DNA of 64,000 nt from Macrostomum lignano. Taxonomy: Eukaryota. The notes under the pieces were generated by a model. That model was not told the DNA's origin, did no database searches, and saw nothing but the letters and a program-made list of their open reading frames with translations. Shown here piece after piece: positions 1,400 to 53,856 of the stretch. Positions within the stretch are counted from its first letter, which is position 1; the number at the start of each line of letters is the position of its first letter. Made by a program: the position numbers and the translations under genes. Location: positions 56,764-120,763 of the forward strand of contig NIVC01001013.1 in NCBI GenBank assembly GCA_002269645.1. Direction: 5' to 3'.

Positions 1400-1530
1400 T
1401 TAACAGGGCGCGGTCGTTCAAACGGTAGACACTGATACGCTTGACATGCTGCCATCACCGCAAAGAAATACACTCTGCTCCGAAGGCAAGACCACTTCGA
1501 GTGGAAGTGCTTGGAGTGCACTGTGCCATG
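1400..1530 (+). pseudogene. Degenerate PHD-finger remnant, probably the 5' part of a MULE-type PHD-FLYWCH gene split by the LINE
   Basis: One + frame reads HAAITAKKYTLLRRQDHFEWKCLEC (W-x-C-x2-C, the PHD C-terminus); the upstream part is broken by stops. An Ala-rich linker continues on the far side of the LINE (AAAAEEADDIFAE|GTGAGT). Confidence 0.4.
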
Positions 1531-1622
1531 TGCACCCCGTGCAGCACCGCGTGCAGCTGCTGCTGCTGCCGACATTGCTGCTGCTGCAGCTCCTGTGCTG
1601 TGTGCACCCCGTGCAGCACCCC

Positions 1623-4300
1623 GTTGTTGTTGTCGCTGAGGCGCGAACATCCCATGCGTTCCTTTTCCACCCCGTGCGGTACCAGGCCCAGTACCTTAGC
1701 GCCTCCTCCGGGTGCTCGTTAATGAGGCGCAGCTCAGTGGGCCCGCCCATCCTGCGTCGGATTTCCGTGGCCGGGCAGTGGCAGCTGACGTGCTCAACCG
1801 TTTCCTCCTCAGTCCCGCACGCTGGGCACATCGCGTCGGTGGTCCTGCCTATTCTGCGGCAGTAGGCCCCCAGCTCCAGCGAGTGGCCCGTGCGGAACCG
1901 AGTGAAGCTGACCGCCTCCGCCCTGTCCTTGTAGGCTGGGTGCCTGGCTGTGCCGAGGTCGCCGTAGGTGCTCTTCGTTCTACCGTGCGTCCAGTGCCTG
2001 CTGTTGTAGCTTGCGGCCCTCGTCTCCGCTGCCAGACGTCTGCGGATCACACTCGCCAGCACACCGGCTTCCTTCTGCGGCAGCTCCGTCGCGCCTCCGG
2101 CAACTTTGTCTGCGACCTCGTTACCCTCCAACCCGCAGTATGGGCCGGCGTCCAGCATAGCGCTATCTCGCGTCCGGTCTGGCAGGTCTTGTACAGCAGC
2201 TTGCGGATCTTTATCGCGATTGGATTGCGACCTCGGCCCTGGACCGCGAGGAGCCCACTCTTGCTGTCTGACGCGATCAGCGCTGTGCTCCATGTCGGCT
2301 GCTTGCATAGCCAGGCCACCGCGAGCTCCAGGGCGGTAAGCTCGGCTTACAGCGAGGAGGCCGGCTGCCCGGCTGCCCTCCGGAGGTTGGTCTGAACGCC
2401 GAATTGTTCTCCTAGCTGTTAGGCGTCCCTTCCGGTAGATGACCACTCCGCTGCCACCGCCCTCCTTCTGTACCGACCCGTCCGTGTAGATGATGATGTC
2501 GGGGTCGTGGCTGGCCTGCTTGATCCTCGTTTGGGCCATCTCGAGATTGCCGTCGCGTGTCTCTTGCCTTGCATCATCGGTTGAGACGAGGAAGGTGATG
2601 TTGTCCCTCCAGCTCTGCCAAGGGGGGAGGTCCGTCGCGTCCTCGAGCCTCGCCACCTCGTCTAGGCCGGCGTTGGCGAGACCTCTGCTGGCCTGAACTC
2701 TCCAGCCTTGCCTCTTCAGCCTTTGCCTGGTCTGCTGGCTGCCAAGGCGGTATCTTGGCGAACTGGTCTCAAGCCTGAGCCACCGGTCCAGCTTTGTGTT
2801 CCAGATCACTTCACATTGGTTCCGGATCGAGAGTAGCCCGCTCTCGCAGCGTAGGGCCTCAACAGGGGTGGTAGCGACCGCTCCGGTGATGATGCGCTGC
2901 ACGCTACGCTGCACTACTTCGAGCTTACGCCAGGCCGCGCTAGTAAGCCACGGCGTCCAGGCACAGGCCCCGTAGAGCAGTTTGCTGCGGATGAGGGCGA
3001 TATAGGTGTTGCGGATGAGCTCGGCTTGCCAGCCCCAGGAGCTGCCCGCGAGGCGCCGCAGCAGGTTGAGGCGGTTCCGGCAGTTGCGGATCACGTTGTC
3101 CGCGTGCGCTGTGAACCTCAGCTGTCTATCAAACGTAAGCCCGAGGAATGTAGGCTGCTCGATCCATTGCATTGGCTGTCCTTGTAGCACCACGTTCGGG
3201 GCCGCCGCCCTCTGCGGGGTCATCGCCGGGTCGCTGGAGAAGAGGGTGAGCGAGCACTTCTCCGTGGCAACCGGTAGCAGCCATGCTTCACTCCAAGCTT
3301 GCAGGACGTCGACCGCCGCCTGCTGGGTGGACGAGGCCTCCGCGGCTCTTCTGCTGCTGGTCCAGGTGGCCAGATCATCCGCATAGCCGCTAACCTGCAG
3401 GTCCGGGATTGAGTCTAGTTCCCTGAGGAGGTCGTCGATGAAGACGATGAATAGCAGCGGCGACAGCACAGAGCCCTGCGGTAGCCCTTGCTGGAAAAGT
3501 TCCCGCTTGCTGTCGACGTCTCCAACCCGGACACACGCCAGCCTGTTCGCTAGCCAGCCCTGTATCCATCTGACCGTTTTGGGGCCAATGCCCGCGTTGA
3601 GTAGCTTGATCAGCAGCCCGTCTCGCCAGACCTTGTCAAAGGCGCGCGCAAAGTCGAACAGCGCCAGGACCGTCAGTTTCCGCTTTTGGAATGCGTCGTC
3701 GATCGATTGGGACAGGCGGAGCAGTTGGTCTTCCGTGGACCTGCCTCCTCTGAACCCCGCTTGTGCTTCGCTGAGGCCGCCGGAGGACTCAAGAACATGC
3801 TTGATGCGGTTCGCAAGCACCCGTTCCATCCACTTGCCGAGGCTGGATGTCAGGCTGACCGGCCGGTATGATCCTATGTCCTTGGCGGGTTTCCCGCTCT
3901 TAAGCAGCGGTATGATGCGGGCCGTGCGCCAGTTTTGTGGAGCGAAGCCGCCGTCATATAACCGGTTAAACAGCCTTAGGACCTCATGTAGCGCCTCCCG
4001 GGGGAGCGCCTTCAGCAGCTTCGGGTGGAGGCCGTCCATGCCGGCGGCTCTGTTGGCGTCCATACTCTGCAGCGCAGCTTGCAGCTCGTCCAGGGTCAGG
4101 GCTTGGCAGTCCGCAGCATTGGGGGAAGTGGCGCTTTGCCGCAGGCGGGCGTTAATTTCTCTGCGTGCCCATCTGTGCCTGGCCCGGACGGTGTTGGCGC
4201 TGACCTTGGCGTACACTTTCGCAATGATGTTCGCCTTGGCTCTGTACCTTCTTCCTTCGTGCTCTAGGATCTGGTCTCTGCTGGCGTCGCCGCGCCGTTG
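1623..4300 (-). CDS. Reverse transcriptase + RNase H + CCHC finger of the LINE (RNase H disrupted)
   Basis: ORF 1418..4420 carries the RT motifs (AAGMDG, YRPVSLTSSLGKWMER, QAGFR, DFARAFDKV, LPQGSVLSPLLF, YADD, FLG). The RNase H middle part lies in another frame (ORF 2047..2319) with an in-frame TAA just before AEL. Confidence 0.92.
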
Positions 4301-5075
4301 AGCTGTTTCAGCAGTGACCATATCTTGTCCGCCGTTGCACTGTTGTCCAACTTGTCTCTCCATCGTTCCCTCCTGCTCTCCTGCTGCTTCCTCCTGATCT
4401 GTTGGTCCAGGTGCTTCCATTCATCCGACTCGATACCCTCTCTTTCCCTGAGGTTATCTCTTTCCGCCATCAGGTGCTGGACTTCCTCGTCGACGAACAC
4501 CGCGTTTCTGGTCTTCCTGGCCACCATGCCCACCGCCTTGCGGGCCGCCTTCACAAGGCACCTTCGCAGCTGCTCTTCATGCTCCGAGTTGCTGAGAATC
4601 TGGAGGTTCGAGTTCCTGAGATGTTCCCTGACCAGATGTTGGTACAGCGGCCAGTCCGCCTTCTTCCAGTTCCAGCACATGTTCTTCCTAGTGCTGGGGT
4701 CCGGGTCCGAGTTCGCTTCCCTGCGGCTGATGATGATCGGCAGGTGGTCGGAGCTCAACCTGTTCGCCGTCCGCCATTCCCACTGGTCTAGCTCCGCCTG
4801 TGGGACTATGGTCACGTCCGGCGAAGACCTGTGCTCCCCGTCACGGCTGGTTCGCGTGGTGGATCCATCATTAAGCGCCGCCAGCAGCTGGTCGTCCATC
4901 CAGTCGACGAGCTCTTCGCCTCGTCTGTCCCTGGGGGAGCTGTTGTCCCACAGCTCGTGGTGCGCATTCCAGTCGCCGGCCAGGAGCAGGTTCTCGCCGC
5001 TTGGGATCTGCAGCAGCTCAGTGGCTGTCATGCTGCAGGTCGCTTGAGGCGGTATGTAAATGTTGATCAGCAGTA
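4264..5075 (-). CDS. Apurinic-like endonuclease (APE), C-terminal half only, plus linker
   Basis: Motifs INIYIPP, LLAGDWNAHHELW, SSPDVT, SDHLPI. The N-terminal motifs (QWN, QET, GG) are absent; a frameshift near 4280 leads into the RT frame. Confidence 0.88.
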
Positions 5076-5106
5076 GTTGTTCCAGGCCCTGTCTGTTGTT
5101 GACGGC

Positions 5107-5250
5107 GCAGGGCTGGCAGATCCAGCTAGCTCCGTCAGCTGGTCTCCAGCGAGGGATTGTCGTACAGGCGCGGTGGAAGACGCTGGCACACTGCGTGCAC
5201 GGGATGCCGTTATGGCCTGCCCTGATCTTGCGGTCGCATTTGCCGCAGTA
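5107..5250 (-). CDS. PHD finger 2 of the LINE
   Basis: Manual translation, in frame with APE: YCGKCDRKIRAGHNGIPCTQCASVFHRACTTIPRWRPADGASWICQPC, a complete C4HC3 pattern with W-x-C-x2-C. Confidence 0.85.
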
Positions 5251-5569
5251 GCTCGACCTGCTTGGCGAAACAACTTGGTCGGGCGTCGGGGTTCCGCCGG
5301 GTTTTTAGTTTTTGGGTTGGGTGGCGGATTCTCCCGGCTGTCCTCGACTTCAGTGAGTCTCCTCTCCGCAGGCGAGGTGATAGTGCTGGCTCGCTCCTCG
5401 CTGAGGCTCTCGAGTTCACTCCTGCCCGCCTCCGTGCCCTTCTCAGATCTCGGTATTTCGATGCTGCCTTCCGCAGCTCCTGCCGTCTGGCTTTCCTTCC
5501 TGTCCAAGGCGGCTGTGGCCAGCTCGACTGCCTGGCGTAGCCTTGCAGACGCCGCCTTGCTGCACCCGG

Positions 5570-5790
5570 CTTCCCTGCTGAAGGGTCTGATGCTGTCCTT
5601 CCTGATCCAGGACACCTGCCCGGTGCCAAACCAGCTGACCGGCACGTCGTTGCTGCCATGCGCAGTGCAGCTGAGCGCGGCTTGCGCGTCTTCCGCTTGC
5701 AGGCGCTCGGCCGGCCACCAAGCCCAGCCCCTGAGTTTGGCCCAGATGATGTTGTTCCCTGGCCACGGTTCTATCTCTTGGTCGTTCGTT
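5570..5790 (-). CDS. PWWP domain of the LINE
   Basis: GNNIIWAKLRGWAWWPAERL...DVPVSWFGTGQVSWIRKDSIRPF matches the PWWP signature (G-x2-VWAK-x2-G-x-PWWP...V-x-F-F-G...W). Confidence 0.85.
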
Positions 5791-5964
5791 CTCATGATCG
5801 TTCGTTCATTCGTTCGTTCGTTCGTTCTCCTGGTCGCCATGGGTCTCGGTTGGCTTGCACGGCGTGCCGCTCGTCGCTCTTTGCTCGCCTCGTCGCTTGC
5901 CGCTGGTGGGCCTCGGCGCCCCTTGCTCCTTGCCAGGGGTGCTGGCGGTTGGCCGGCTGCCTTG

Positions 5965-6098
5965 GCAGCACGGACCTGTCCAGTCGCCAGCCTTTTCCAG
6001 CGCGTAGAACCTTCCTCTAGTCAGGCCGCTGCACTTAAGGTGAAGGTGGTTTTCGCAGTCCTTGCAGCGAGGGCTCGTTTGCTGCAGAGTCCGCAGAG
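5965..6098 (-). CDS. PHD finger 1 of the LINE (frameshifted)
   Basis: LCGLCSKRAL, then a -1 shift near 6070, then CKDCENHLHLKCSGLTRGRFYALEKAGDWTGPCC; one Cys position reads Gly (GGT). Confidence 0.7.
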
Positions 6099-8564: not shown

Positions 8565-9873
8565 GGATCCTAGTCATTTCGTCAACTGCCATTTCGTCAA
8601 CTGGACACATCGTCAACCCGTTCCCCATATTGGTCGTTTCGTCAACCAACCAATAGGATACTTTCAAAGCTTGGTTATTTCGTCAACGGTTCAATGGGAC
8701 GATGTCAACTTTTGGTCACTTCGTCAACTGCCAATAATACACGCCCCGCATGCAGCCCTCCTCCTTTCTCATTCTGGGCTTGGGACCAGACAATGGCGGA
8801 GTTACTGCCACAAAGATGCAGTTTGTATGGTAAAAAAGGAAAATGCATTGCACAAAATCACAAAGATCACAAAGGCCACCACAAAGGTCACAATCAAATA
8901 TAAAGCTGACCTTCCATCGAGACTTCAGTGAGACGGACCGGCTCTTGGAAGGGCCCTGCGAGGAAGAAACGTGCTTTTTTAATTTTTTAAGAGCAGTTCC
9001 TAGGGTACTAACCATAATGTCTATAATAGGCATGAATCGCACTGTATGGCCTGTTGACGTGGCCGCACAGTCTCTGAGCACTGAATACACTTATCAGTCT
9101 CCATCCAAAGATGTAAAAATTGAGTGGCCCTCCTGAAACCCTACTCCATTATATAGTGTTTGAGGAGGTTGCAGTGTCAGGTTTAAAGTATTTTGGATTG
9201 GTTTGGCTGGTGGGGTTGTTAGTTGGGGATATGATAGTTGGGGATAAGACCTGGTGCCAATTCGCACCTCACAAGAACTGCCTACCTGCCTACCCCTCCC
9301 CTCCGACACCACCCACGTTTTGCTTGAAACCAAGACCAAGATAGGGCGCACGAGCTAGGGCGCACATTGACAGCTTGGGGGGGGGGAGTGGGTGCGAAGA
9401 TGGATTGAGAGAACAGGTGTCAACGCGATGGGCGCTGGTTCAAGTAAAAGAGACAGGGCGCACATTGACAGCTTGGGGGGGGGGGTGGGTGCGAAGATGG
9501 ATTGAGAGAACAGGTGTCAGCGCAAGGGGCCCTGGTTCAAGTTACAGAGATAGGGCACGTTGTCAGTTTGGGGGTGGGTGCGAAGATGAATTGAGAGAAG
9601 TCAGTTGGTTCATCGGTGGTTCTTTTTGTGGTGAATTCAGAAGTAATAACAAAGGTAATAAGCGGATATGACATGCGTTAGTTGATGTACATGTTATGAC
9701 ATTTGCAAACTGTAGACGAAGTAACTAACATTCTCAGGTCATTTCGTCAACTGACTAATGAACCAATCTAAAACCTTGGTCATTTCGTCAACTGCAAGTG
9801 AGACCACCTTAAAATGTTAGTCAATTCGTCAACCCAGTTGACGAACTAGCAGTTGACGAAATGACCAGCACCC
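8565..9873. mobile_element. Non-autonomous TIR DNA transposon with 8-bp TSD (copy 1)
   Basis: Left end GGATCCTAGTCATTTCGTCAACTG; right end reverse complement GGGTGCTGGTCATTTCGTCAACTG. Perfect TSD AACACAAC at 8557-8564 and 9874-9881. Subterminal TTTCGTCAAC repeats at both ends. Confidence 0.88.
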
Positions 9874-10934
9874 AACACAACAGCCTCATTTGTCTTTGTC
9901 TTGACTCTGCGCACAATTTTTCACTTTCTTCTTAGCTATTCCCATTAAAAAATTACAACTTTATAGCACGAATATCCCCATAGTTTAGGAGCCAAAAAGT
10001 TTTACTTTACAAATTTTATCTGGTTCTAGAACCAAAACAAACAATATGAAAAGGCCCGACATCAAAAATATTTGAATATGTAAAATGTTTCAAGAAGAGT
10101 TCTCTTCAACAGAGTAAGAGTTAACACTAGACAATCTGATATTGTAAGTGGAGTAAGACTCCAATTAATTTGCACTTCTCTGAGTCTGAGTCTCATCTTA
10201 CTTTTAATTGCAAACATGCTTGGGCGCAACCTAGGCCCTAGGGATTCACCTAGGTGACCTAGCCATTTCTTTTGGCAACACACACATGTAAGTCACTATT
10301 GAATAGAATAGTAGTCATGTGATTGTTCTTAGCCAGTAGCGACTTACATGTGTATGTTGCCAATAGAAACAGCCAATTAATTCCCAAGGTTGTGCATGTA
10401 TGATTGCAAATAATAAATGCCTATACTTATCTAGCTAAATCTTTGTTTTAATACCCCTAATTGGTTATTTCCTTTTTAAAAACATCTTTAATTTTTAATG
10501 CCTAATATTGCCAGCAATCTTTATCTTTTATTTGATATTGACTAATTTGATTAATATCTTTAAAATACTTAGAGCCTACTTTACTCATTTACTAGATAAA
10601 TTGCACTCCAGTAAGTTCATATGGGCCTAATACTTGTTTTTTAATTCTTTATACTAGGTAGCCCTAGGCCCTAATATAGGCCTAGATAATAGATATGCCC
10701 TATAGCTATAGTGTAGTGATATAGTCTAGGGCTAGGCCTATATGAATCATGTAAATATATATTCAAATGATCATAAACCAAAGAAAATATTGGCATTATA
10801 ACCTTTTTAATGAGTAGAAAGACAATAGCCTCTATGGCTATGCTAGGGCCAAGCTTTTTTATTATTTTCATTTTTATAGGCTCTAATATCTTAGCAAGCC
10901 ATTGTATTGTAACTAACTATAAATTAGATAAATA

Positions 10935-12176
10935 GGGTCCTAGTCATTTTGTCAACTGGCGTTTTGTCAACTGGCCATTTTGTCAACTCAGTTTTTGCAT
11001 TGGTCGTTTTGTCAACTACAACTAGTCAATGAAGCAGTCTCAAACCTCAGTCACTTTGTCAACTGACCAACGGGGAGTTCCCCAATATAGGTCACTTTGT
11101 CAACTGCCAATAAACTATCCTCCATGGCTGCAAAAAAACTAAAACTGAATCCTGAGATGACTAAGTCTACAGGCTATTTAATATATAGATACCTTTTTGC
11201 GCAACATCTGCCGGCTTCGATCGATGCGTCTTTGACTATACATTAACAAACAATAATTCACTCTCAGGTTTTTGAAATGTGTGCAGTATGACGCGGTTGA
11301 TATCCAATGTTACATATTTGCATGACAAATTTTTGGATGTGTAGAAATTCATTAAAGAGTAGTTGATAAGTACTGGACCAAAGATAATAACGCTTGAAAT
11401 GGTCCACTCTACATGGTTTATTTTAAAAATATGAGTATATATAATATATAAAGCATTCCAAATTAACCATAACATTTATGGTCATGTTGATGTCAATCAC
11501 GCAATAAAATTTATATAATAATATATATTATATGCACACACTATACTTAAAACCTATATTTAGTATTAAACACAATCGTACTGCTATTGTAGTGCGATTT
11601 TGTACCATCGCATATACACTGTACAATAGTACATGTAGTTCTGTACAGTAAGCAGTAATATGGTACTAAATGCAGACAAAAGAAAAAATATTATTTTAAG
11701 AAAATTGCAATACTTCTTGGACTTGATTCATTTTACAAGTACGATGCTGCCATCGCTCGCATTTATCACACTGTAGAGCCTATGCATATGGATGCATATG
11801 GGTATGAGTGTGCATAGGTGACACACTTGTATCTAGAATATTCGCATCGGAACATTTAACCTATCAAATATATGTATAATTGGCATGCAGTTAACATATA
11901 TACTGTACCATAACAAAATTGCAAAGTTTGATTGTTTAAAATCAAATTAGGTAATTATTAAAACAAACTCATCAATATAACAACTATTATAAGCTATGCT
12001 GCTGTATGAACTACATATCATTCATATAATGACAATTTTGGTCACTTCATCAACAAGCAAATGGGGAGGACCTAGGCATTGGTCACTTTGTCAACCACCA
12101 GTAAAGTTGCCTTAACACTTTGGTCACTTAGTCAACCGAGTTGACAAAATGCCAGTTGACAAAATGACCATTACCC
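10935..12176. mobile_element. Non-autonomous TIR DNA transposon, same TIR family (copy 2)
   Basis: Left GGGTCCTAGTCATTTTGTCAACTGG; right reverse complement GGGTAATGGTCATTTTGTCAACTGG. TSD GATAAATA / AATAAATA (7 of 8). Subterminal TTTTGTCAAC repeats. Confidence 0.82.
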
Positions 12177-13495: not shown

Positions 13496-14143
13496 ATGAC
13501 TGCAGCTTGCACTATGGACCGAGATGCTGCCGAGGCTCGCGAATGGTTCGACCTGATGGATATTGATGGCGACGGGTTGATCAGCGCCCAGGAGCTGCGC
13601 TGCGGCCTTCTCAGCCCGGCCTGCAAGCCATTCACCCAGCCCACCTGTCGCCTGCTGGTTCGCATCTTCGACACGCACGCTCGAAATAGCCAATTAGAAT
13701 TTGGCGAATTTCTTGAGCTGCGCTCATTCCTGCACGAATGGTCCATGACGTTTCTTGACCAGGACCACGATCGGTCTGGCAGCATTGACCAGTTCGAGCT
13801 GATTGTAGCGCTCAGCACTATCTACAAACATCAGTTTAATCCGCAGTTCATCTCTCGCCTAATTGCTTTATTGAAATCGCGCTTATCCCGCTCTGTGCAT
13901 CGAATGTCGCTCAGCCTTGATGCCTTCCTAGCGCTGAACGCCTGTCTGTCTCGCTTGGCGCGGCTGTACAAGACTGGCGGGCATCGGTACACGGCGCCAT
14001 CTCTTGAAGATTATCTGCTGCGCGAGCTGCCCAGAATGCTGGACGGTGAAGGCGAGTTCTTAGCCGCTGCTGATAATGCAAACAATGCGGATGGAGCTCA
14101 GCCTCGTGCCCCAGCCGCCTCTTCTGTAGAACTGTCTAGCTGA
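13496..14143 (+). CDS. Penta-EF-hand (peflin/ALG-2/sorcin-like) protein, paralog 1, intronless and divergent
   Basis: WFDLMDIDGDGLISAQEL, TCRLLVRIFD, DHDRSGSIDQFEL; colinear with the two downstream paralogs. Confidence 0.85.
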   Translation: MTAACTMDRDAAEAREWFDLMDIDGDGLISAQELRCGLLSPACKPFTQPTCRLLVRIFDTHARNSQLEFGEFLELRSFLHEWSMTFLDQDHDRSGSIDQFELIVALSTIYKHQFNPQFISRLIALLKSRLSRSVHRMSLSLDAFLALNACLSRLARLYKTGGHRYTAPSLEDYLLRELPRMLDGEGEFLAAADNANNADGAQPRAPAASSVELSS

Positions 14144-14623: not shown

Positions 14624-14935
14624 CCTTACAATGTCACTGTCTATGGGTGGCTCTGGCTCGTGACTCGCCCCCTCTAGATTAAAATCCTGACCGCGCCACT
14701 GGGCGAAGAGCGAAGAGACAGTTTTTGAAGGGTCGTTTTACGCGATAGAAATGCTTTGTAATAAAGCTTTACTTTTTTCACCATCCGTCTATTCAACTGT
14801 TTAAAGCGTAACACAGGTTTCTTTTGTTATGGAAATATGTGCGCGAAACCAATACAAAATTCAATCTGCGTATAAAGACTGCTTATTTTTTGCTTGAAGC
14901 CGGCCTTCAAATTTTTCTTCTTAGAAATGCAGTGC

Positions 14936-15225
14936 CCATACATGCGCAACCTCCAAAATTCGGTCGGACATGCGACTTAGTTTTAACAAAAATGCGACGT
15001 AGTTTTTGGCCAAAAATGCGACTCACATGAAAAAAAACCCTAACAAAATTAACGCAACTGTGGGTAAACGGCAGGAGTAACTATGACTGTCTTATTAAGT
15101 CAAAATGCCTCGTCAGCTACTTAGTACTACTACTTTGGTATTTTTTTCGGGTGGGCATTTTTGCGACTTCCTTGGTTGGCCGCCAAATCGGTCGGCCGGA
15201 TCGGCCGACTGTTGCGCATGTATGG
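14936..15225. mobile_element. 290-bp MITE with perfect 15-bp TIR and 6-bp TSD, carrying a 28S rRNA fragment
   Basis: TIR CCATACATGCGCAAC (14936-14950) / GTTGCGCATGTATGG (15211-15225); CAGTGC on both flanks (14930-14935, 15226-15231). Confidence 0.85.
15062..15125 (+). other. Degenerate eukaryotic LSU (28S) rRNA fragment, helix 69-71 region; not a functional rRNA gene
   Basis: GGGTAAACGGCAGGAGTAACTATGACTGTCTTA-ttaagtca-AAATGCCTCGTCAGCTACTTAGT versus the conserved 28S sequence (recalled) GGGTAAACGGCGGGAGTAACTATGACTCTCTTA-aggtagcc-AAATGCCTCGTCATCTAATTAGT. Confidence 0.85.
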
Positions 15226-15318
15226 CAGTGCCCCATCTCTCTTAGTTTTCACTGGCAGATTATGGTCGCTAACAGCTATTAGACTTAGAGTCAAGGACCA
15301 GTAAAATAAAATTTACTG

Positions 15319-15485
15319 GTGGGGATTATAAGAATAAAATTTATTTATTCTTATAAATAAATAAATCAATAAATAAAATAAATAAATCAATAAATAAATC
15401 AATAAATAAATAAATAAATAAATAAATTCTTATAAATAAATAAATAAATCAGAGACTTTATAAAATTTATTCTTATAATCCCCAC
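15319..15485. repeat. Small inverted-repeat element with (AAAT)n interior
   Basis: GTGGGGATTATAAGAATAAA / TTTATTCTTATAATCCCCAC, a perfect 20-bp IR; no clean TSD. Confidence 0.65.
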
Positions 15486-17263: not shown

Positions 17264-18621
17264 TCTTTCCAATACAATTTCAACCAGCCCGCCTATGAAG
17301 GGCCGCCGCCCTCCTACGAGGAGTCCATGGCGATGGCGCCCCCTGCCAGGCCGGCGGCTCCGTCGGCCCCGCAGCCGCAGCCGGTGAACCCGGAGGTGGC
17401 CATGTGGTTCGCCGCCGTTGACGAGAACAATGACGGCTCAATCACGGTGCAGGAGTTGCAGGAGGCCCTGGTTACCGACGATTGGCGTCATTTCACTCTG
17501 AGCACCTGCCGGCTGCTGGTCAGCATGTTCGATGTTGACAAGAGCGGTTTTATTGAGCTCGGCGAGTTCGAGGTTCGATTTTTAAAAGAATTGGTGGCTT
17601 GTATTTGAATTGAAGACTGCGGATGCGTTGTTAGTCTTTTATATTCCCGAAAATTCCATTCGCAAAACTACTGGCTTCACAAACCTTAATCTTCACAATT
17701 CACTAGCTTCACAAACCTTAAGCTTCACAATTCACACTGGCTTCACAAACCTTAAGCTTCACAATTCACTAGCTTCACAAACATTAATCTTCACAATTCA
17801 CTATCTTCACAATCCACAATCTTCACAATCCACAATCTTCAATCCACAATATTTACAATCCACAACCTTCACAAACCACAGTCTTCACAATCCACAATCT
17901 TCACAATCCACAATCTTCACAATCCACAACCTTCACAAACCACAGTCTTCACAATCCACAAATTTACAATCCACAACCTTCACAAACCACAGTCTTCACA
18001 ATCCACAATCTTCACAATCCACAATCTTCACAATCCACAACCTTCACAAACCACAGTCTTCACAATCCACAAATTTACAATCCACAACCTTCACAAACCA
18101 CAGTCTTCACAATCCACAGTCTTCACAATCCACAAATTTACAATCCACAACCTTCACAATCCACAATCTTCACAATCCACAGTCTTCACAATCCACAACC
18201 TTTCCAACCCACGAGTTTCACAATCATTTTACAACTTAACATGGTGGCAACGTGTCTCATAGCCAGATATCCCAAGGCTTGCTCAGAGCTCCCCAACCCC
18301 CCCCCCCCTGTCCAGGCCATCTACAACTTTGTGCAGCGCTGGCGCGGCATCTTCATGTCCTACGACGCCGACAACTCGGGCCTGATCGACTCCAAGGAGC
18401 TGGCCTCGGCACTGCAGCAGATCCACTCGCGCCAGTTCTCGCCACATTTTCTACACGTGGCTCAGCGCAGATTCCAGCAGAACGGGTCCGGCGAGATGAA
18501 TCTGGACGGCTTCATCTCGCTGAACGCGCTAATTAGCCGGTACAGCAGGGACTACGAGACTAACGGCAGAGGCCAGGCCTTTGAGGAGTTCCTTATTCGC
18601 AGTCTGAATAGCAGCGCCTGA
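17264..18621 (+). CDS. Penta-EF-hand protein, paralog 2 (exons 17264/17327-17572 and 18316-18621)
   Basis: Pro-rich N-terminus, WFAAVDENNDGSITVQEL, FDVDKSGFIELGEFE|AIYNF, YDADNSGLIDSKEL. Phase-0 GT-AG intron 17573-18315. An acceptor CCGCAG at 17263 is in frame; no upstream start exon was located, and ATG 17327 is an alternative start. Confidence 0.88.
17670..18235. repeat. Intronic minisatellite, ~16-bp units CTTCACAATCCACAAT / CTTCACAAACCACAGT
   Basis: Direct inspection; fills the intron of PEF paralog 2. Confidence 0.92.
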
Positions 18622-22242: not shown

Positions 22243-22560
22243 AAGAGTGCCCAGTTCCTCAGTTAAGAGTGCCCAGATTCTCAGTTAAGAGTACCCAGTT
22301 CCTCAGTTAAGAGTGCCCAGATCCTCAATTAAGAGTGCCCAGATTCTCAGTTAGGAGTGCCCAGAGCCTAAGTTAAGAGTGCCCAGATCCTCAGTTAAGA
22401 GTACCCAGATCCTCAATTAAGAGTGCCCAGATTCTCAGTTAAGAGTACCCAGATCCTCAGTTAAGAGTACCCAGTTCCTCAGTTAAGAGTGCCCAGATCC
22501 TCAATTAAGAGTGCCCAGATTCTCAGTTAGGAGTGCCCAGAGCCTAAGTTAAAAGTGTCC
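22243..22560. repeat. Minisatellite, 20/21-bp unit CTCAGTTAAGAGTGCCCAGAT
   Basis: Direct inspection. Confidence 0.93.
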
Positions 22561-22566
22561 AGATTC

Positions 22567-22742
22567 TGTCTTACAGCTACAATACCAACATCCCCAGTCT
22601 TACAGCTACAATACCAACATCCCCAGTCTTACAGCTACAATACCAACATCCCCAGTCTTACAGCTACAATACCAACATCCCCAGTCTTACAGCTACAATA
22701 CCAACATCCCCTGTCTTACAGCTACAATACCAACATCCCCAG
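22567..22742 (+). repeat. Six copies of a 29-bp unit spanning the intron/exon junction of PEF paralog 3
   Basis: Unit (A/T)GTCTTACAGCTACAATACCAACATCCCC; the last copy runs straight into the coding sequence (SYSYNTNIPSYGD). Confidence 0.92.
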
Positions 22743-24153
22743 TTACGGGGACGCGGCTGGAGTGCCGCCGCCGCCAGCCTACGAAGATGCGGCTGGAGCA
22801 AATCGAGGTGGCGCCGGATCGCATCCCGGATATCCTGCTCAGCAGCAGCAGCCGCCGTACAATCCGCAGTTCAATCCTCAGCAGCAGCAGCAGCAGCAGC
22901 CCTACAATCCGCAGTTCAATCCCCAGCAGCAGCAGCAGCCCTACAATCCGCAGTTCAATCCCCAGCAGCAGCAGACTCCGTATCCTCAGCAGCCGCCGTA
23001 CAATCCGCAGCAGCAGCAGCCGGGGCCGCCGCCTCCGTCTCTGCAGCTGGCGTCCAACGTGAACCCGGAGGTGGCCAGCTGGTTCGCCGTTGTTGACGAA
23101 AATCGCGACGGCGCAATCACCGTGTCGGAGCTGCAGAGCGCTCTGATCAATGACGACGGCAGATCGTTTGAACTGGCAACTTGCCAGATGCTGGTGAACA
23201 TGTTCGACTCCGACCGGAGCGGCACTATTGACGTTCGAGAGTTCGAGGTGAGCTTTGGGATTAGCGGACCTTAGCCTTCTCGGGATTGGATTAGCGGAGC
23301 TTAATCTTTTCAGGATGGGATTAGCGGAGCTTAATCTCAGGATGGGATTAGCGGAGCTTAATCTCAGGATAGGATTAGCGGAGCTTAATCTTTTCAGGAT
23401 GAGATTAGCAGAGCTTAATCTCAGGATGTAATTAGCGGAGCTTAATCTTTTCAGGATGAGATTAGCAGAGCTTAATCTCAGGATGGGATTAGCGGAGCTT
23501 AATCTCAGTATGGGATTAGCGGAGCTTAATCTCAGTATGGGATTAGCGGAGCTTAATCTCAGTATGGGATTAGCGGAGCTTAATCTCAGTATGGGATTAG
23601 CGGAGCTTAATCTCAGTATGGGATTAGCGGAGCTTAATCTCAGGATGGGATTAGCGGAGCTTAATCTTTTTGTGTCTAAATGAGATTTCGCCAGCTCATC
23701 TTAACCACCTCACCAGAACTCACCAGTACGCACACCGTAGGAGATTCGCTTCACATCCTTTTCTCGCTACTCATTAGTAGCCGATCGGATTCGAGAGCTC
23801 AGAAGCTGTCTGCATGACAAACGCCACCCCCCTTGGCCTCATTCACGCAGGCCATCTTCAATTTCGTCCGTCATTGGCGCGCCGTGTTCGTCGACTTCGA
23901 CGCCAGCCGGTCGCGCCAGCTGACGCCGATGGAGCTCGGCAACGCCCTCAACCGCGTGCACTCCTGCGCCTTCTCGCCGCGCTTTATTGACCAGGCCGCT
24001 CGCCGGTTCGCCCGGCCGCCAGCTATGGAAGTCGGCCTGGACAGCTTCATCTCGCTGAACGCCCTGATCGCCTCGGCGGCGCATCGCTACCGCACCGAGG
24101 GCCGCGGCGCGCCCTACGAGGACTTCCTGCTCAACTGTATTATGCGGGCCTGA
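22714..24153 (+). CDS. Peflin-like penta-EF-hand protein, paralog 3, with long Pro/Gln/Tyr-rich N-terminus (exons ~22714-23247 and 23851-24153)
   Basis: PPYNPQFNPQQQQ repeats, WFAVVDENRDGAITVSEL, FDSDRSGTIDVREFE|AIFNF. Phase-0 intron 23248-23850 at the same position as in paralog 2. The 5' start is unresolved. Confidence 0.88.
23255..23670. repeat. Intronic minisatellite, ~27-bp unit GGATTAGCGGAGCTTAATCTCAGTATG
   Basis: Direct inspection; lies in the intron of PEF paralog 3. Confidence 0.93.
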
Positions 24154-29637: not shown

Positions 29638-31479
29638 TAGGAGTGTTGGTAGAGCTGCGCTGAGCACATCCAAGTTATGGCGCTACACATCAGGTTCTGG
29701 GCTGCCATATAGGGTTCAGGCGCCACATTTAGGGTTCAGGCGCCACATGTAGGGTTCAGGCGCCACATGTAGGGTTCAGGCGCCACATGTAGGGTTCAGG
29801 CGCCACATTTAGGATTCAGGCGCCATATGTAGGGTTCAGACGCCACATATCATATTCTGGCGCCACATATCATATTCTGGCGCCACATATCATATTCTGG
29901 CGCCACATATCATATTCTGGCGCCACATATCATATACTGGCGCCACATATCATATTCTGGCGCCACATATCATATTCTGGCGCCACATATCATATTCTGG
30001 CGCCACATATCATATTCTGGCGCCACATATCATATTCTGGCGCCACATATCATATTCTGGCGCCACATATCATATTCTGGCGCCACATATCATATTCTGG
30101 CGCCACATATCATATTCTGGCACCACATATCATATTCTGGGGCCAAATATCAGATTATAGCGCCAAATTTTATATTCTAGTGCCATATATCAGATTCTGG
30201 CGCCTCACATCGGATTCTGGCGCCTCACATCGGATTCTGGCGCCTCACATCGGATTCTGGCGCCTCACATCGGATTCTGGCGCCTTACATCGGATTCTGG
30301 CGCTATAAATTGTGGCGCCAGCATCTGATTTGTGATGTCAGAGTCTGATGTTTAGCGCTAGAATATTATGTGTGGCGCCAGAATCTGATATGTGTCACTA
30401 GAATCTGATGTGAGGCGCCAGAATCCGATGTGAGGCACAAGAATCCAATGTGAGGCGCCAGAATCTGATATATGGCGCTAGAATATAAATTTTGGCGCCA
30501 GAATATGATATGTGGCGCTAAGTAATGATATTTGGTGCCAGAGTATGATATGTGGTGTCAGAACCTGATATATGGCGCTAGAATATAAATTTTGGCGCCA
30601 GAATATGATATGTGGCGCCAGAAGATGATATGTGGCGCCAGAATCTGATTTATGGCGCTAAATAATGATACTTGGTGCCAGAGTCAGATATGCGGCGCCA
30701 GAATCCGATGTAAGGCGCCAGAATCCGATGTGAGGCGCCAGAATCCGATGTGAGGCGCCAGAATCCGATGTGAGGCGCCAGAATCTGATATATGGCACTA
30801 GAATATATATTTTGGCGCCAGAATATGATATGTGGTGCTAAATAATGATATTTGGTGCCAGAGTACGATATGTGGGGTCAGAACCTGATATATGGCGCTA
30901 GAATATAAAATGTGGCGCCAGAATATGATATGTGGCGCTAAATAATGATATTTGGTGCCAGGGTACGATATGTGGTGTCAGAACCTGATATATGGCGCTA
31001 GAATATAAAATGTGGCACCAGAATATGATATGTGGCGCCAGAATCTGATTATGGCGCTAAATAATGATACTTGGTGCCAGAGTCAGATATGCGGCGCCAG
31101 AATCCGATGTAAGGCGCCAGAATCCGATGTAAGGCGCCAGAATCCGATGTAAGGAGCCAGAATCCGATGTGAGGCGCCAGAATCTGATATATGGCACTAG
31201 AATATAAAATTTGGCGCTATAATCTGATATGTGGCGCCAGAATCCGATGTGAGGCGCTAAATAATGATATTTGGCCCCAGAATATGATATGTGGCACCAG
31301 AGTATGATATGTGGCGCCAGAGTATGATATGTGGCACCAGAGTATGATATGTGACGCCTGAACCCTACATGTGGCGCCTGAACCCTAAATGTGGCGCCTG
31401 AACAGTATATGGCAGCCCATAACCTGATGTGTAGCGCCATAACTTGGATGTGCTCAGCACAGCTCTACCAACACTCCTA
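29638..31479. mobile_element. Foldback-like element: long inverted arms built from 20-bp GGCGCC-core satellite
   Basis: TAGGAGTGTTGGTAGAGCTG.GCTGAGCACATCCAAGTTATGGCGCTACACATCAGGTT... at 29638 is mirrored at the right end (to 31479). Repeat orientation flips at about 30305-30315 (TCTGGCGCCACATATCATAT to ATATGATATGTGGCGCCAGA). TSD not resolved. Confidence 0.8.
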
Positions 31480-51884: not shown

Positions 51885-52622
51885 TCAACCTCTCGCTCCT
51901 TGGATAATCATAAGAATAAATAGGAAGATGTTGACAATGTCCAAGTAGAGATTAAGCGCAGCAAACACGTACTCTTCGGGCGACAGAGAGTACTTGTGCT
52001 TGCCGCCCAGCATCATCTGGGTGTCCACAACCAGGTACACGCTGAACAGCAATGCTCCCAAACAGGCATAGGCTAGGGTGGCAAACCTGTTCTGCACAAT
52101 AGCGCACAGCAGACCAAACAGAATCAGGGCGATGAGCAGGACAAACAGAATTCCGCTCAGATAGGTGAAATCAATCTTAGTCTGCATAGCGAACAGAGTC
52201 AGAGCGAACACTATGAACACTGTGACACCGATAGCCATAAACACGGCGTCAGTATCGAAGCGAGCAGAGATGCTGCCTAGCATGTAGCTCTCGCACAGAG
52301 TGAACAAGCCCAACAAGATTAAGTTGACAGGAAACTTCCGCCTGACATCCTCGCAACAGGCCAGGACAATGACTAGTATTATAGTTAGCACCAAGGCTAA
52401 GATGTACAGCCAGTCATTGCGTATAGCATACTGTTTAATCGGCTGGCAGAACACAAACAGCGCTATAAATCCCATGGTGACCACGAGCTGTACAGTGAGT
52501 ATGCCGTACACTTTGCGCACGAATCCTTTCCTAATAGACTCTTCGTTAAATTGCATATTGCCATTGTCTACAAGGCCGCCGGATTCCGCGTCACCCGACT
52601 GCGGCTCGCTGGCTGCCGCCAT
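51885..52622 (-). CDS. Lifeguard/TMBIM (Bax inhibitor-1 family) protein A, intronless
   Basis: IRKGFVRKVYGILTVQL, RRKFPVNLILL, QTKIDFT, YLVVDTQMMLGGKH, SPEEYVFAALNLYLDIVN. Confidence 0.95.
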   Translation of the reverse strand: MAAASEPQSGDAESGGLVDNGNMQFNEESIRKGFVRKVYGILTVQLVVTMGFIALFVFCQPIKQYAIRNDWLYILALVLTIILVIVLACCEDVRRKFPVNLILLGLFTLCESYMLGSISARFDTDAVFMAIGVTVFIVFALTLFAMQTKIDFTYLSGILFVLLIALILFGLLCAIVQNRFATLAYACLGALLFSVYLVVDTQMMLGGKHKYSLSPEEYVFAALNLYLDIVNIFLFILMIIQGARG

Positions 52623-53124: not shown

Positions 53125-53856
53125 TTAGTCCCGAAACGATGAAGTAAGCATTAGAATGAAGAGGAGCAGATTGAAAATATCCATGTAGATGTTCAGAGCG
53201 GCAAAGATATATTCCTCAGGCGACACCGAGTATTTATGCTTTCCGCCAAGCATCAGCTGAGTGTCAACGACTAAGTAGACGCTGAATATTAGAGCGCCCA
53301 GACACGAGTAGACCAGGGTGAGGTACCGAGATTGAAGAATAGCGCACAGGATGCCGAATGCTACAAGTACAATTACTAGTACAAACAGGATACCGCTCAG
53401 GTAAGTGAAGTCCAGCTTAGTTTGCAAAGCAAAGATGGTCAGTGCAAGCACTACAAAAGCTGTCACCCCAACAGCGATTAGTACAGCATCGGTTTTGAAG
53501 CGAGCGGACACCAGGCCCAATGCAAAGCCTTGAAGCAAGGTGAACAGGCCAAGCAGAATAAAGTTGAGCGGAAACTTCCGCCTGACACTGTCGAAGCATG
53601 ACAAAACAATGAGGAATACGAATAGTACAGAAAATACCACAATATAGAGCCACTGAAACTTTATAGCAAACTTCTTGGCCGGCTCGAAGAATATGAAGAA
53701 TGCAATGCAACCGCCCGATATCAGCAGCTGGCAGCACAATATGCTGTAAACCTTGCGAATAAATGCCTTGCGAATAGGTTCCTCAGTTAATTGCTGTTGA
53801 AATTCTCTGTCGGATGTGTGTTTAGCCGACTCTAATTGTGACGGCCCAACTGACAT
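53125..53856 (-). CDS. Lifeguard/TMBIM protein B, intronless tandem paralog
   Basis: IRKAFIRKVYSIL, RRKFPLNFILL, QTKLDFT, YLVVDTQLMLGGKH, SPEEYIFAALNIYMDIFN. Confidence 0.95.
   Translation of the reverse strand: MSVGPSQLESAKHTSDREFQQQLTEEPIRKAFIRKVYSILCCQLLISGGCIAFFIFFEPAKKFAIKFQWLYIVVFSVLFVFLIVLSCFDSVRRKFPLNFILLGLFTLLQGFALGLVSARFKTDAVLIAVGVTAFVVLALTIFALQTKLDFTYLSGILFVLVIVLVAFGILCAILQSRYLTLVYSCLGALIFSVYLVVDTQLMLGGKHKYSVSPEEYIFAALNIYMDIFNLLLFILMLTSSFRD

Follow-up and report, generated by a model that had tools for sequence, protein, structure and literature searches.

The DNA analysed here is a 64-kb stretch, at about positions 56764-120763, of contig NIVC01001013.1 in assembly GCA_002269645.1 ("the window" denotes this whole stretch). 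The contig belongs to NIVC00000000, the Mlig_3_7 genome of Macrostomum lignano (PMC5730564). The window is patchy in composition and rich in minisatellites. Fifty-six tandem-repeat rows are spread across it, several of them inside introns or coding N-termini, and a palindrome of about 1.7 kb, at positions 29706-31403, is built from head-to-head arrays of one minisatellite with a 20-bp unit. The gene content comprises a non-LTR retrotransposon, three penta-EF-hand-like genes, a zinc-finger gene, a sugar transporter and malate dehydrogenase.

The non-LTR retrotransposon occupies positions 1418-6020 on the minus strand and includes a 1000-aa reverse transcriptase ORF (RVT_1). An ORF upstream of it combines an apurinic-type endonuclease with a PHD finger, and a PWWP-domain ORF lies further upstream. 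The protein closest to the reverse transcriptase is an M. lignano UniRef entry, at 74% identity, which is also its only close M. lignano relative; marine metagenome assemblies hold abundant relatives at about 40% identity. The LINE, PWWP and FLYWCH ORFs of the window are absent from the recorded genes. Two tandem intronless Bax-inhibitor/TMBIM genes (245 and 243 aa) are found on the minus strand at 51885-52622 and 53125-53856. Identical products of the TMBIM and ATP-synthase subunit c genes are encoded on one public contig, NIVC01001013.1 itself. A homeologous contig, NIVC01000696.1, is collinear over its positions 109522-134889 with the interval 37.7-62 kb of the window, at 91-99% identity and with intergenic DNA included. 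Most of the difference between the two is in the copy number of minisatellites. They encode an identical sugar-transporter protein, and neither TMBIM gene is called on NIVC01000696.1.

The three penta-EF-hand-like genes are arranged in tandem at 13496-14143, 17327-18621 and 22531-24153. The first is a single 215-aa ORF, absent from the public gene set and with no protein match at the strict cut-off of E 1e-20; the second and third are split by introns bearing minisatellites. The element that is the subject of this study sits between the first and second of these genes, in intergenic DNA about 0.8 kb downstream of the first ORF. Its flanks are unique within the window, so that it is not nested in another repeat. 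No empty-site paralogue of the insertion was found in the window; extrapolation from collinearity places the homeologous site at about 157-158 kb of NIVC01000696.1.

Other small repeats occur in the same part of the window. About 90 bp to the right of the element, positions 15319-15485 hold a 167-bp palindromic sequence whose perfect 20-bp arms (GTGGGGATTATAAGAATAAA) flank an (ATAA)n core. A target-site duplication is not evident around this sequence, which may represent another small insertion of the foldback or MITE-like type. At 8572-9867 and 10942-12168 lie two units of about 1.2-1.3 kb, each bounded by inverted TAGTCATTT(C/T)GTCAACTG motifs and containing repeated subterminal copies of CATTT(C/T)GTCAACTG. 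With ends that are 70-75% alike, the two units resemble diverged copies of one further TIR-type repeat.

The element itself is 290 bp long (14936-15225). It begins with a terminal inverted repeat, CCATACATGCGCAAC (14936-14950, plus strand), and ends with its counterpart, GTTGCGCATGTATGG (15211-15225, minus strand). The two are complementary at 15 of 15 positions and lie 260 bp apart. Inspection of the sequence and a scan for target-site duplications (TSDs) identified the direct repeat CAGTGC at 14930-14935, immediately to the left of the element, and inspection identified it again at 15226-15231, immediately to the right. The outermost C/G pair of the inverted repeats can also be assigned to the duplication. 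The element then has 14-bp terminal inverted repeats (TIRs) starting with CATAC and an 8-bp TSD, GCAGTGCC, at 14929-14936 and 15225-15232. On the single copy the two readings fit equally well and predict an identical empty site, AAATGCAGTGCCCCATCTC. The first-pass annotation of this DNA had described perfect 15-bp TIRs, which stand, and a TSD of 6 bp, which holds in part: CAGTGC does abut both ends, but the 8-bp GCAGTGCC is equally good. It had also stated that the ends match no superfamily that could be named with confidence. That statement depended on a duplication of 6 bp, and an 8-bp duplication with 14-bp TIRs is equally readable; hence, the superfamily puzzle is an ambiguity of reading and no real anomaly. 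Duplications of 8 bp are made by hAT, P and other superfamilies.

Chance offers a poor account of these ends. When the head-to-head minisatellite arrays are left out of the count, the element's termini are the only perfect inverted repeats of at least 13 bp, lying within 1.5 kb of each other, that are accompanied in the 64 kb by an adjacent direct repeat of at least 6 bp. We estimate that random sequence would contain about 0.09 perfect 15-bp inverted repeats within 1.5 kb per 64 kb, and that the requirement for an abutting direct repeat of at least 6 bp lowers the expectation by a further factor of about 1e-3. These estimates weigh against the view that the structure was never mobile, that is, that an inverted repeat and a flanking direct repeat came together by chance or through local rearrangement around an orphan fragment derived from rDNA. 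That view draws on the fact that a single copy was found in the approximately 95 kb of M. lignano DNA searched. It has to contend also with an enrichment of subterminal motifs (P = 8e-7) of the kind typical of transposon ends, and we regard it as very improbable.

The motifs in question are concentrated next to the two ends. The left subterminal region (14956-15032, plus strand) contains CGGTCGG at 14961 and three direct copies of ATGCGAC (14970, 14992 and 15016), each of them within a AAAATGCGAC(N)TAGTTTT-like unit. The right subterminal region (15157-15210, plus strand) contains a fourth TGCGAC at 15162 and a second CGGTCGG at 15189, and a palindrome, GTCGGCCG-GAT-CGGCCGAC, abuts the right TIR at 15191-15209. 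Thus, four copies of TGCGAC (14971, 14993, 15017 and 15162) fall within the 290 nt of the element, against 15 in the whole 64 kb (P = 8e-7), while both occurrences of CGGTCGG on the plus strand of the window lie inside the element, one near each end. Such enrichment is a typical subterminal feature of cut-and-paste elements. These motifs are probably binding sites for a transposase. All of them are in direct orientation and none is inverted, an odd arrangement for transposase-binding sites that serve two ends.

The element has no meaningful coding capacity. Its 65-aa ORF had zero relatives in a word-index protein search. A 49-aa ORF on the minus strand gave one weak match in an exhaustive HMMER search. 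This match was rejected, being the translation of a tandem repeat on an unrelated metagenome contig that shows no similarity at the DNA level. As a single strand the element folds strongly (z = -4.7), mostly because of its TIRs.

A single copy was found in approximately 95 kb of M. lignano DNA, made up of the 64-kb window and about 31 kb besides. No second copy was detected in the window by searches with the TIR, with a conserved internal block (block A, see below) or by BLASTN with the whole element; nor was one detected in the 5 kb past the window end or in 25 kb of NIVC01000696.1 (a stretch ending at the equivalent of window position 37.7 kb). Apart from the element's own ends, one TIR-like match was detected in the window (10389-10403); it has 2 mismatches and is at chance level. 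A weak similarity between the element and a 16-bp minisatellite at 27.3-27.8 kb was likewise dismissed as chance. The TIR pair is absent from viral contigs, and a string search of the literature for the TIRs and for the altered core described below returned zero matches. None of the 10 window ORFs scanned contains a DNA transposase domain.

The interior of the element contains a sequence of quite different origin. As a 28S reference we used the 84-nt R2 target duplex printed in bioRxiv 10.1101/2024.11.11.623112, which is concordant with the oligonucleotides in PMC13000458. Two blocks on the plus strand align with this reference: block A (15062-15094; BLAST 31/33, E 4e-9 in the window), which includes the helix-69 loop sequence ACTATGAC, and block B (15103-15125; BLAST 21/23). 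The blocks are in register, and the canonical spacing between them is exact. The 64-nt match to 28S claimed by the first-pass annotation is therefore real and truly derived from the region of helices 69-71, and the four scattered mismatches that it counted outside one altered block were found as described, two per conserved block. The 64 nt proved, nonetheless, to understate the extent of the homology, which in fact covers about 80 nt: a fragment of 28S rDNA in the sense orientation, reaching from helix 69 to the helix 71 region (15046-15125, plus strand). The 5' extension emerged from comparison with 121 eukaryotic LSU matches from metagenome contigs, retrieved with a pattern that left free the four scattered mismatch positions and the 8-nt core. 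Against these genes similarity continues 5' to position 15046 (67/82 identity, E 5e-15), and 3' of 15125 it drops at once to the level of chance (6-8 of 30). The rest of the element has no match to the 121 LSU-bearing contigs outside 15046-15125. Rfam found neither rRNA nor any other credible match, whether across the window at gathering thresholds or around the element at E values up to 10. A piece of rDNA with so sharp a 3' boundary looks like a captured fragment.

The natural LSU genes also show how far the fragment departs from 28S. At every free position 113 of the 121 are canonical (AGGTAGCC in the core), and each of the other 8 differs by a single base. None of the 121 carries any of the four scattered variants of the element. 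One of the element's changes, a C-to-G at 15089, breaks a helix-69 stem pair on direct reading of the sequence, so the rRNA structure is not maintained. Divergence from 28S amounts to about 7% in the two conserved blocks and to 25% in the 5' extension. Since the fragment has diverged while the TIRs and TSDs, 46 nt altogether, are perfect, most of the decay would predate this insertion, which suggests that the 28S fragment was already old when the present copy inserted.

These features bear on the proposal that the fragment serves a function. One form of it takes up a suggestion of the first-pass annotation: a multicopy MITE would spread an rRNA-like cassette whose nuclease site has been deliberately inactivated, and which would act as a decoy for rDNA-specific nucleases or as a source of rRNA-like small RNA. 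MITE transcripts that feed small-RNA pathways fold well. The element does fold well as RNA (z = -4.7), through its TIRs and local hairpins, and the nuclease core is indeed destroyed. Strong folding is, however, expected of any element with TIRs; no second copy turned up in the approximately 95 kb of M. lignano DNA or in the metagenome, prokaryote and viral collections; and the fragment is decaying, with its helix-69 pairing broken. The decoy idea, moreover, defeats itself, because a site that a nuclease can neither recognise nor cut cannot occupy that nuclease. We found nothing in favour of either role, decoy or small RNA, and consider a functional cassette very improbable.

In a second form of the proposal, the 28S-like segment would have been kept for its likeness to the element's own subterminal repeat (AAAATGC...ACTTAGT), serving as an extra transposase-binding site or reflecting a transposase that targets 28S sequence, in parallel to Dada transposons. 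Repeat finding does group block B with the subterminal units (AAAATGCC...ACTTAGT; AAAATGC...ACTTAGT), and two changes from canonical 28S, in or next to block B, raise its likeness to the AAAATGC...ACTTAGT unit. Such likeness is a weak hint that could indicate co-option rather than neutrality. The subterminal motifs that Dada elements have in common with their target genes provide a precedent (PMC3706591). The similarity is short, though, with two runs of 7 nt separated by a 10-nt gap, and its recognition was post hoc; the present copy lies outside rDNA; and the element has perfect TIRs, whereas Dada has none. Co-option of this sort seems to us very unlikely.

Between blocks A and B lies the most conspicuous departure from 28S. 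At 15095-15102 (plus strand) the element has TTAAGTCA where 28S has AGGTAGCC, with identity at 1 of 8 positions. In an ungapped comparison, 7 of the 11 mismatches of the 64-nt match fall within this one 8-nt stretch (P ~2.5e-4 by permutation). The place is a familiar one. R2 nicks the bottom strand at TTAAGG|TAGCC (PMC13000458), and the I-PpoI site, CTCTCTTAAGGTAGC, overlaps helix 69 (bases 1906-1924) in an rDNA stretch that is a pseudopalindrome centred on TTAA (PMC2602781). The naming of the R2 insertion site and of the I-PpoI core in the first-pass annotation is thereby confirmed from these papers. The altered core takes in the R2 nick as well as the I-PpoI site's right half. An intact R2/I-PpoI site is not present; the element reads CTGTCTTATTAAGTC there. 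Destruction of the core by a non-random cluster of changes, as the annotation had it, is thus borne out. Its description of the core as scrambled captured a genuine mutation cluster but overstated the change: in the gapped BLAST alignment an insertion of TT, a deletion of AG and two substitutions suffice. In exact scans the altered core was absent from metagenome contigs, prokaryotic genomes and viral contigs.

The nature of the event can be narrowed down to some extent. The exact spacing of the blocks argues for one complex event rather than for two separately captured pieces of rDNA. Together with the upstream TGACT, the altered core forms a new 5-bp hairpin, TGACT/AGTCA (dG -2.5 kcal/mol, versus -0.2 kcal/mol for the canonical sequence); in a control, 8 of 200 shuffled sequences folded as well, so that the hairpin gives weak support. 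A further point against it is that reading the core as an inverted copy requires a skip of 3-4 nt. Imperfect palindromes are places where fold-back or template-switch mutations give clustered, length-neutral changes. Palindromy attracts homodimeric homing endonucleases and would favour mutations of this kind as well, which gives the coincidence of the altered core with a nuclease site a mundane common cause.

How much this coincidence should count was estimated by placing an 8-nt block at random in the 64-nt match. For such a block, the probability of lying across the R2 nick is 0.12, and that of touching the 15-bp I-PpoI site is 0.39. The coincidence is therefore weak evidence, and statistically not compelling. 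It is nevertheless central to a reading in which the fragment was copied, or descends, from an rDNA unit that suffered cleavage or invasion at the R2/I-PpoI/Pokey hot spot and was then misrepaired, so that the altered core would mark the break and the element would be a relic of contact with an rDNA-targeting mobile element. The altered block does cover both the R2 nick and the I-PpoI cleavage centre, and its changes are clustered, as if from one repair event, and partly mirror the flanking sequence, as in end-joining or hairpin-type repair. R2 is reported in another flatworm, Schistosoma mansoni (PMC10946416). Apart from the non-significant position (P = 0.12 to 0.39), this account is weakened by the unchanged net length, which break-repair scars and excision footprints do not usually show, by the content of the window, where no R2, homing endonuclease or rDNA sequence was found, and by the 121 natural LSU genes, not one of which has a comparable lesion. 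On balance we think it unlikely that the core records damage at the rDNA site.

Together, the data point, with a probability that we put somewhat above even, to a single insertion of a small non-autonomous class II transposon carrying captured 28S filler that has been decaying neutrally. The sequence of events could have been as follows. A transposase supplied in trans would have bound the ends and subterminal motifs and moved the element to its present site. The 28S piece would be passenger filler that an ancestral element acquired as a copy through template switching, presumably during repair of the double-strand gap left by excision, in the manner of abortive gap repair in Ds and P elements or of Pack-MULE capture. 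It would since have decayed without constraint. The 8-nt altered core may represent one complex mutational event at the TTAA-centred pseudopalindrome, either a fold-back or template-switch patch or a set of compensating small indels. It would have arisen in the rDNA copy that served as the source, or else within the element. The R2/I-PpoI site would then have been lost as a by-product and not for any function.

Taken this way, the element is most likely one more transposon with host DNA picked up, and a useful footnote to the list of mobile elements that carry rDNA-derived modules. A 2024 review lists 28S-derived sequence in mobile elements only for the retroposon SINE28 (PMC10946416). The find would matter more if copies throughout the genome all kept the 28S module, or if relatives occupied 28S genes; a family of this kind would indicate a new rDNA-associated DNA transposon in a flatworm model amenable to transgenesis. 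We also considered, while giving it very little credence, that a flatworm DNA-transposon lineage has a working relationship with the helix-69 site of 28S. Such a lineage either would descend from a transposon that targeted the rDNA site, the module being a fossil of the occupied or excised target, or would encode a transposase that recognises 28S sequence, the module being kept as a binding or homing element. If true, rDNA-associated DNA transposons would comprise a second kind in addition to Pokey, at the hot spot that R2 and I-PpoI also use.

Mobile elements with rDNA-derived modules are documented in several groups and provide the natural comparisons. 5S promoters occur in SINEs and in Cassandra TRIMs, Pokey and mPok MITEs carry intergenic-spacer repeats, and the retroposon SINE28 carries 28S fragments (PMC10946416). 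Pokey and mPok of Daphnia, which belong to the piggyBac superfamily, resemble the present case in that a DNA transposon and its MITE derivatives contain internal rDNA-derived sequence (PMC10946416). Their rDNA module comes from the intergenic spacer, however, whereas that of the element comes from 28S coding sequence. Pokey inserts at TTAA in CTCTTAAGG, in the same region of 28S. Assignment to piggyBac/Pokey was rejected, since the TSD of that group is TTAA, against CAGTGC or GCAGTGCC here, and the element is not in rDNA. SINE28 of mammals shares with it a body derived from 28S rDNA (PMC10946416); it was set aside as a retroposon devoid of TIRs, the element having a cut-and-paste structure. 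Dada transposons make TSDs of 6-7 bp and have subterminal motifs in common with their targets, which are multicopy RNA genes; they sit inside snRNA or tRNA genes and possess subterminal inverted repeats only, with no TIRs (PMC3706591). Membership in this group does not agree with the perfect 15-bp TIRs of the element or with its unique intergenic flanks, which have no Rfam match.

Non-autonomous hAT and P elements likewise have short TIRs and subterminal repeats, and one of the two readings of the duplication would give the element their TSD length of 8 bp. The P element begins with CATGATG, and in the 14-bp reading the TIR likewise starts with CAT. For hAT the TIR consensus is YARNG and the preferred TSD is nTnnnnAn; the element differs on both counts, its TIR starting with CATAC (or CCATA) and its TSD being GCAGTGCC. 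The sequence has TIRs, a flanking TSD and a length of 290 bp (under ~800 bp), with no coding capacity, all as in MITEs. The designation MITE used in the first-pass annotation suits a short, non-coding element bounded by TIRs and a TSD, although the label, like the annotation's word "dispersing", also implies a multicopy family, and only one copy was seen in about 95 kb. Known from one copy, the element is best classed among MITE-like non-autonomous TIR elements, as one that carries a captured piece of host DNA. Analogues with captured DNA include the filler left by abortive gap repair in maize Ds, internally deleted P elements and Pack-MULE-type capture. Like the MITEs and non-autonomous TIR transposons that carry host DNA, the element is short and non-coding, has TIRs, a TSD and subterminal repeats, and contains an internal patch of unrelated host DNA with sharp boundaries; it differs from them in that the piece captured here is a highly conserved coding segment of 28S rRNA.
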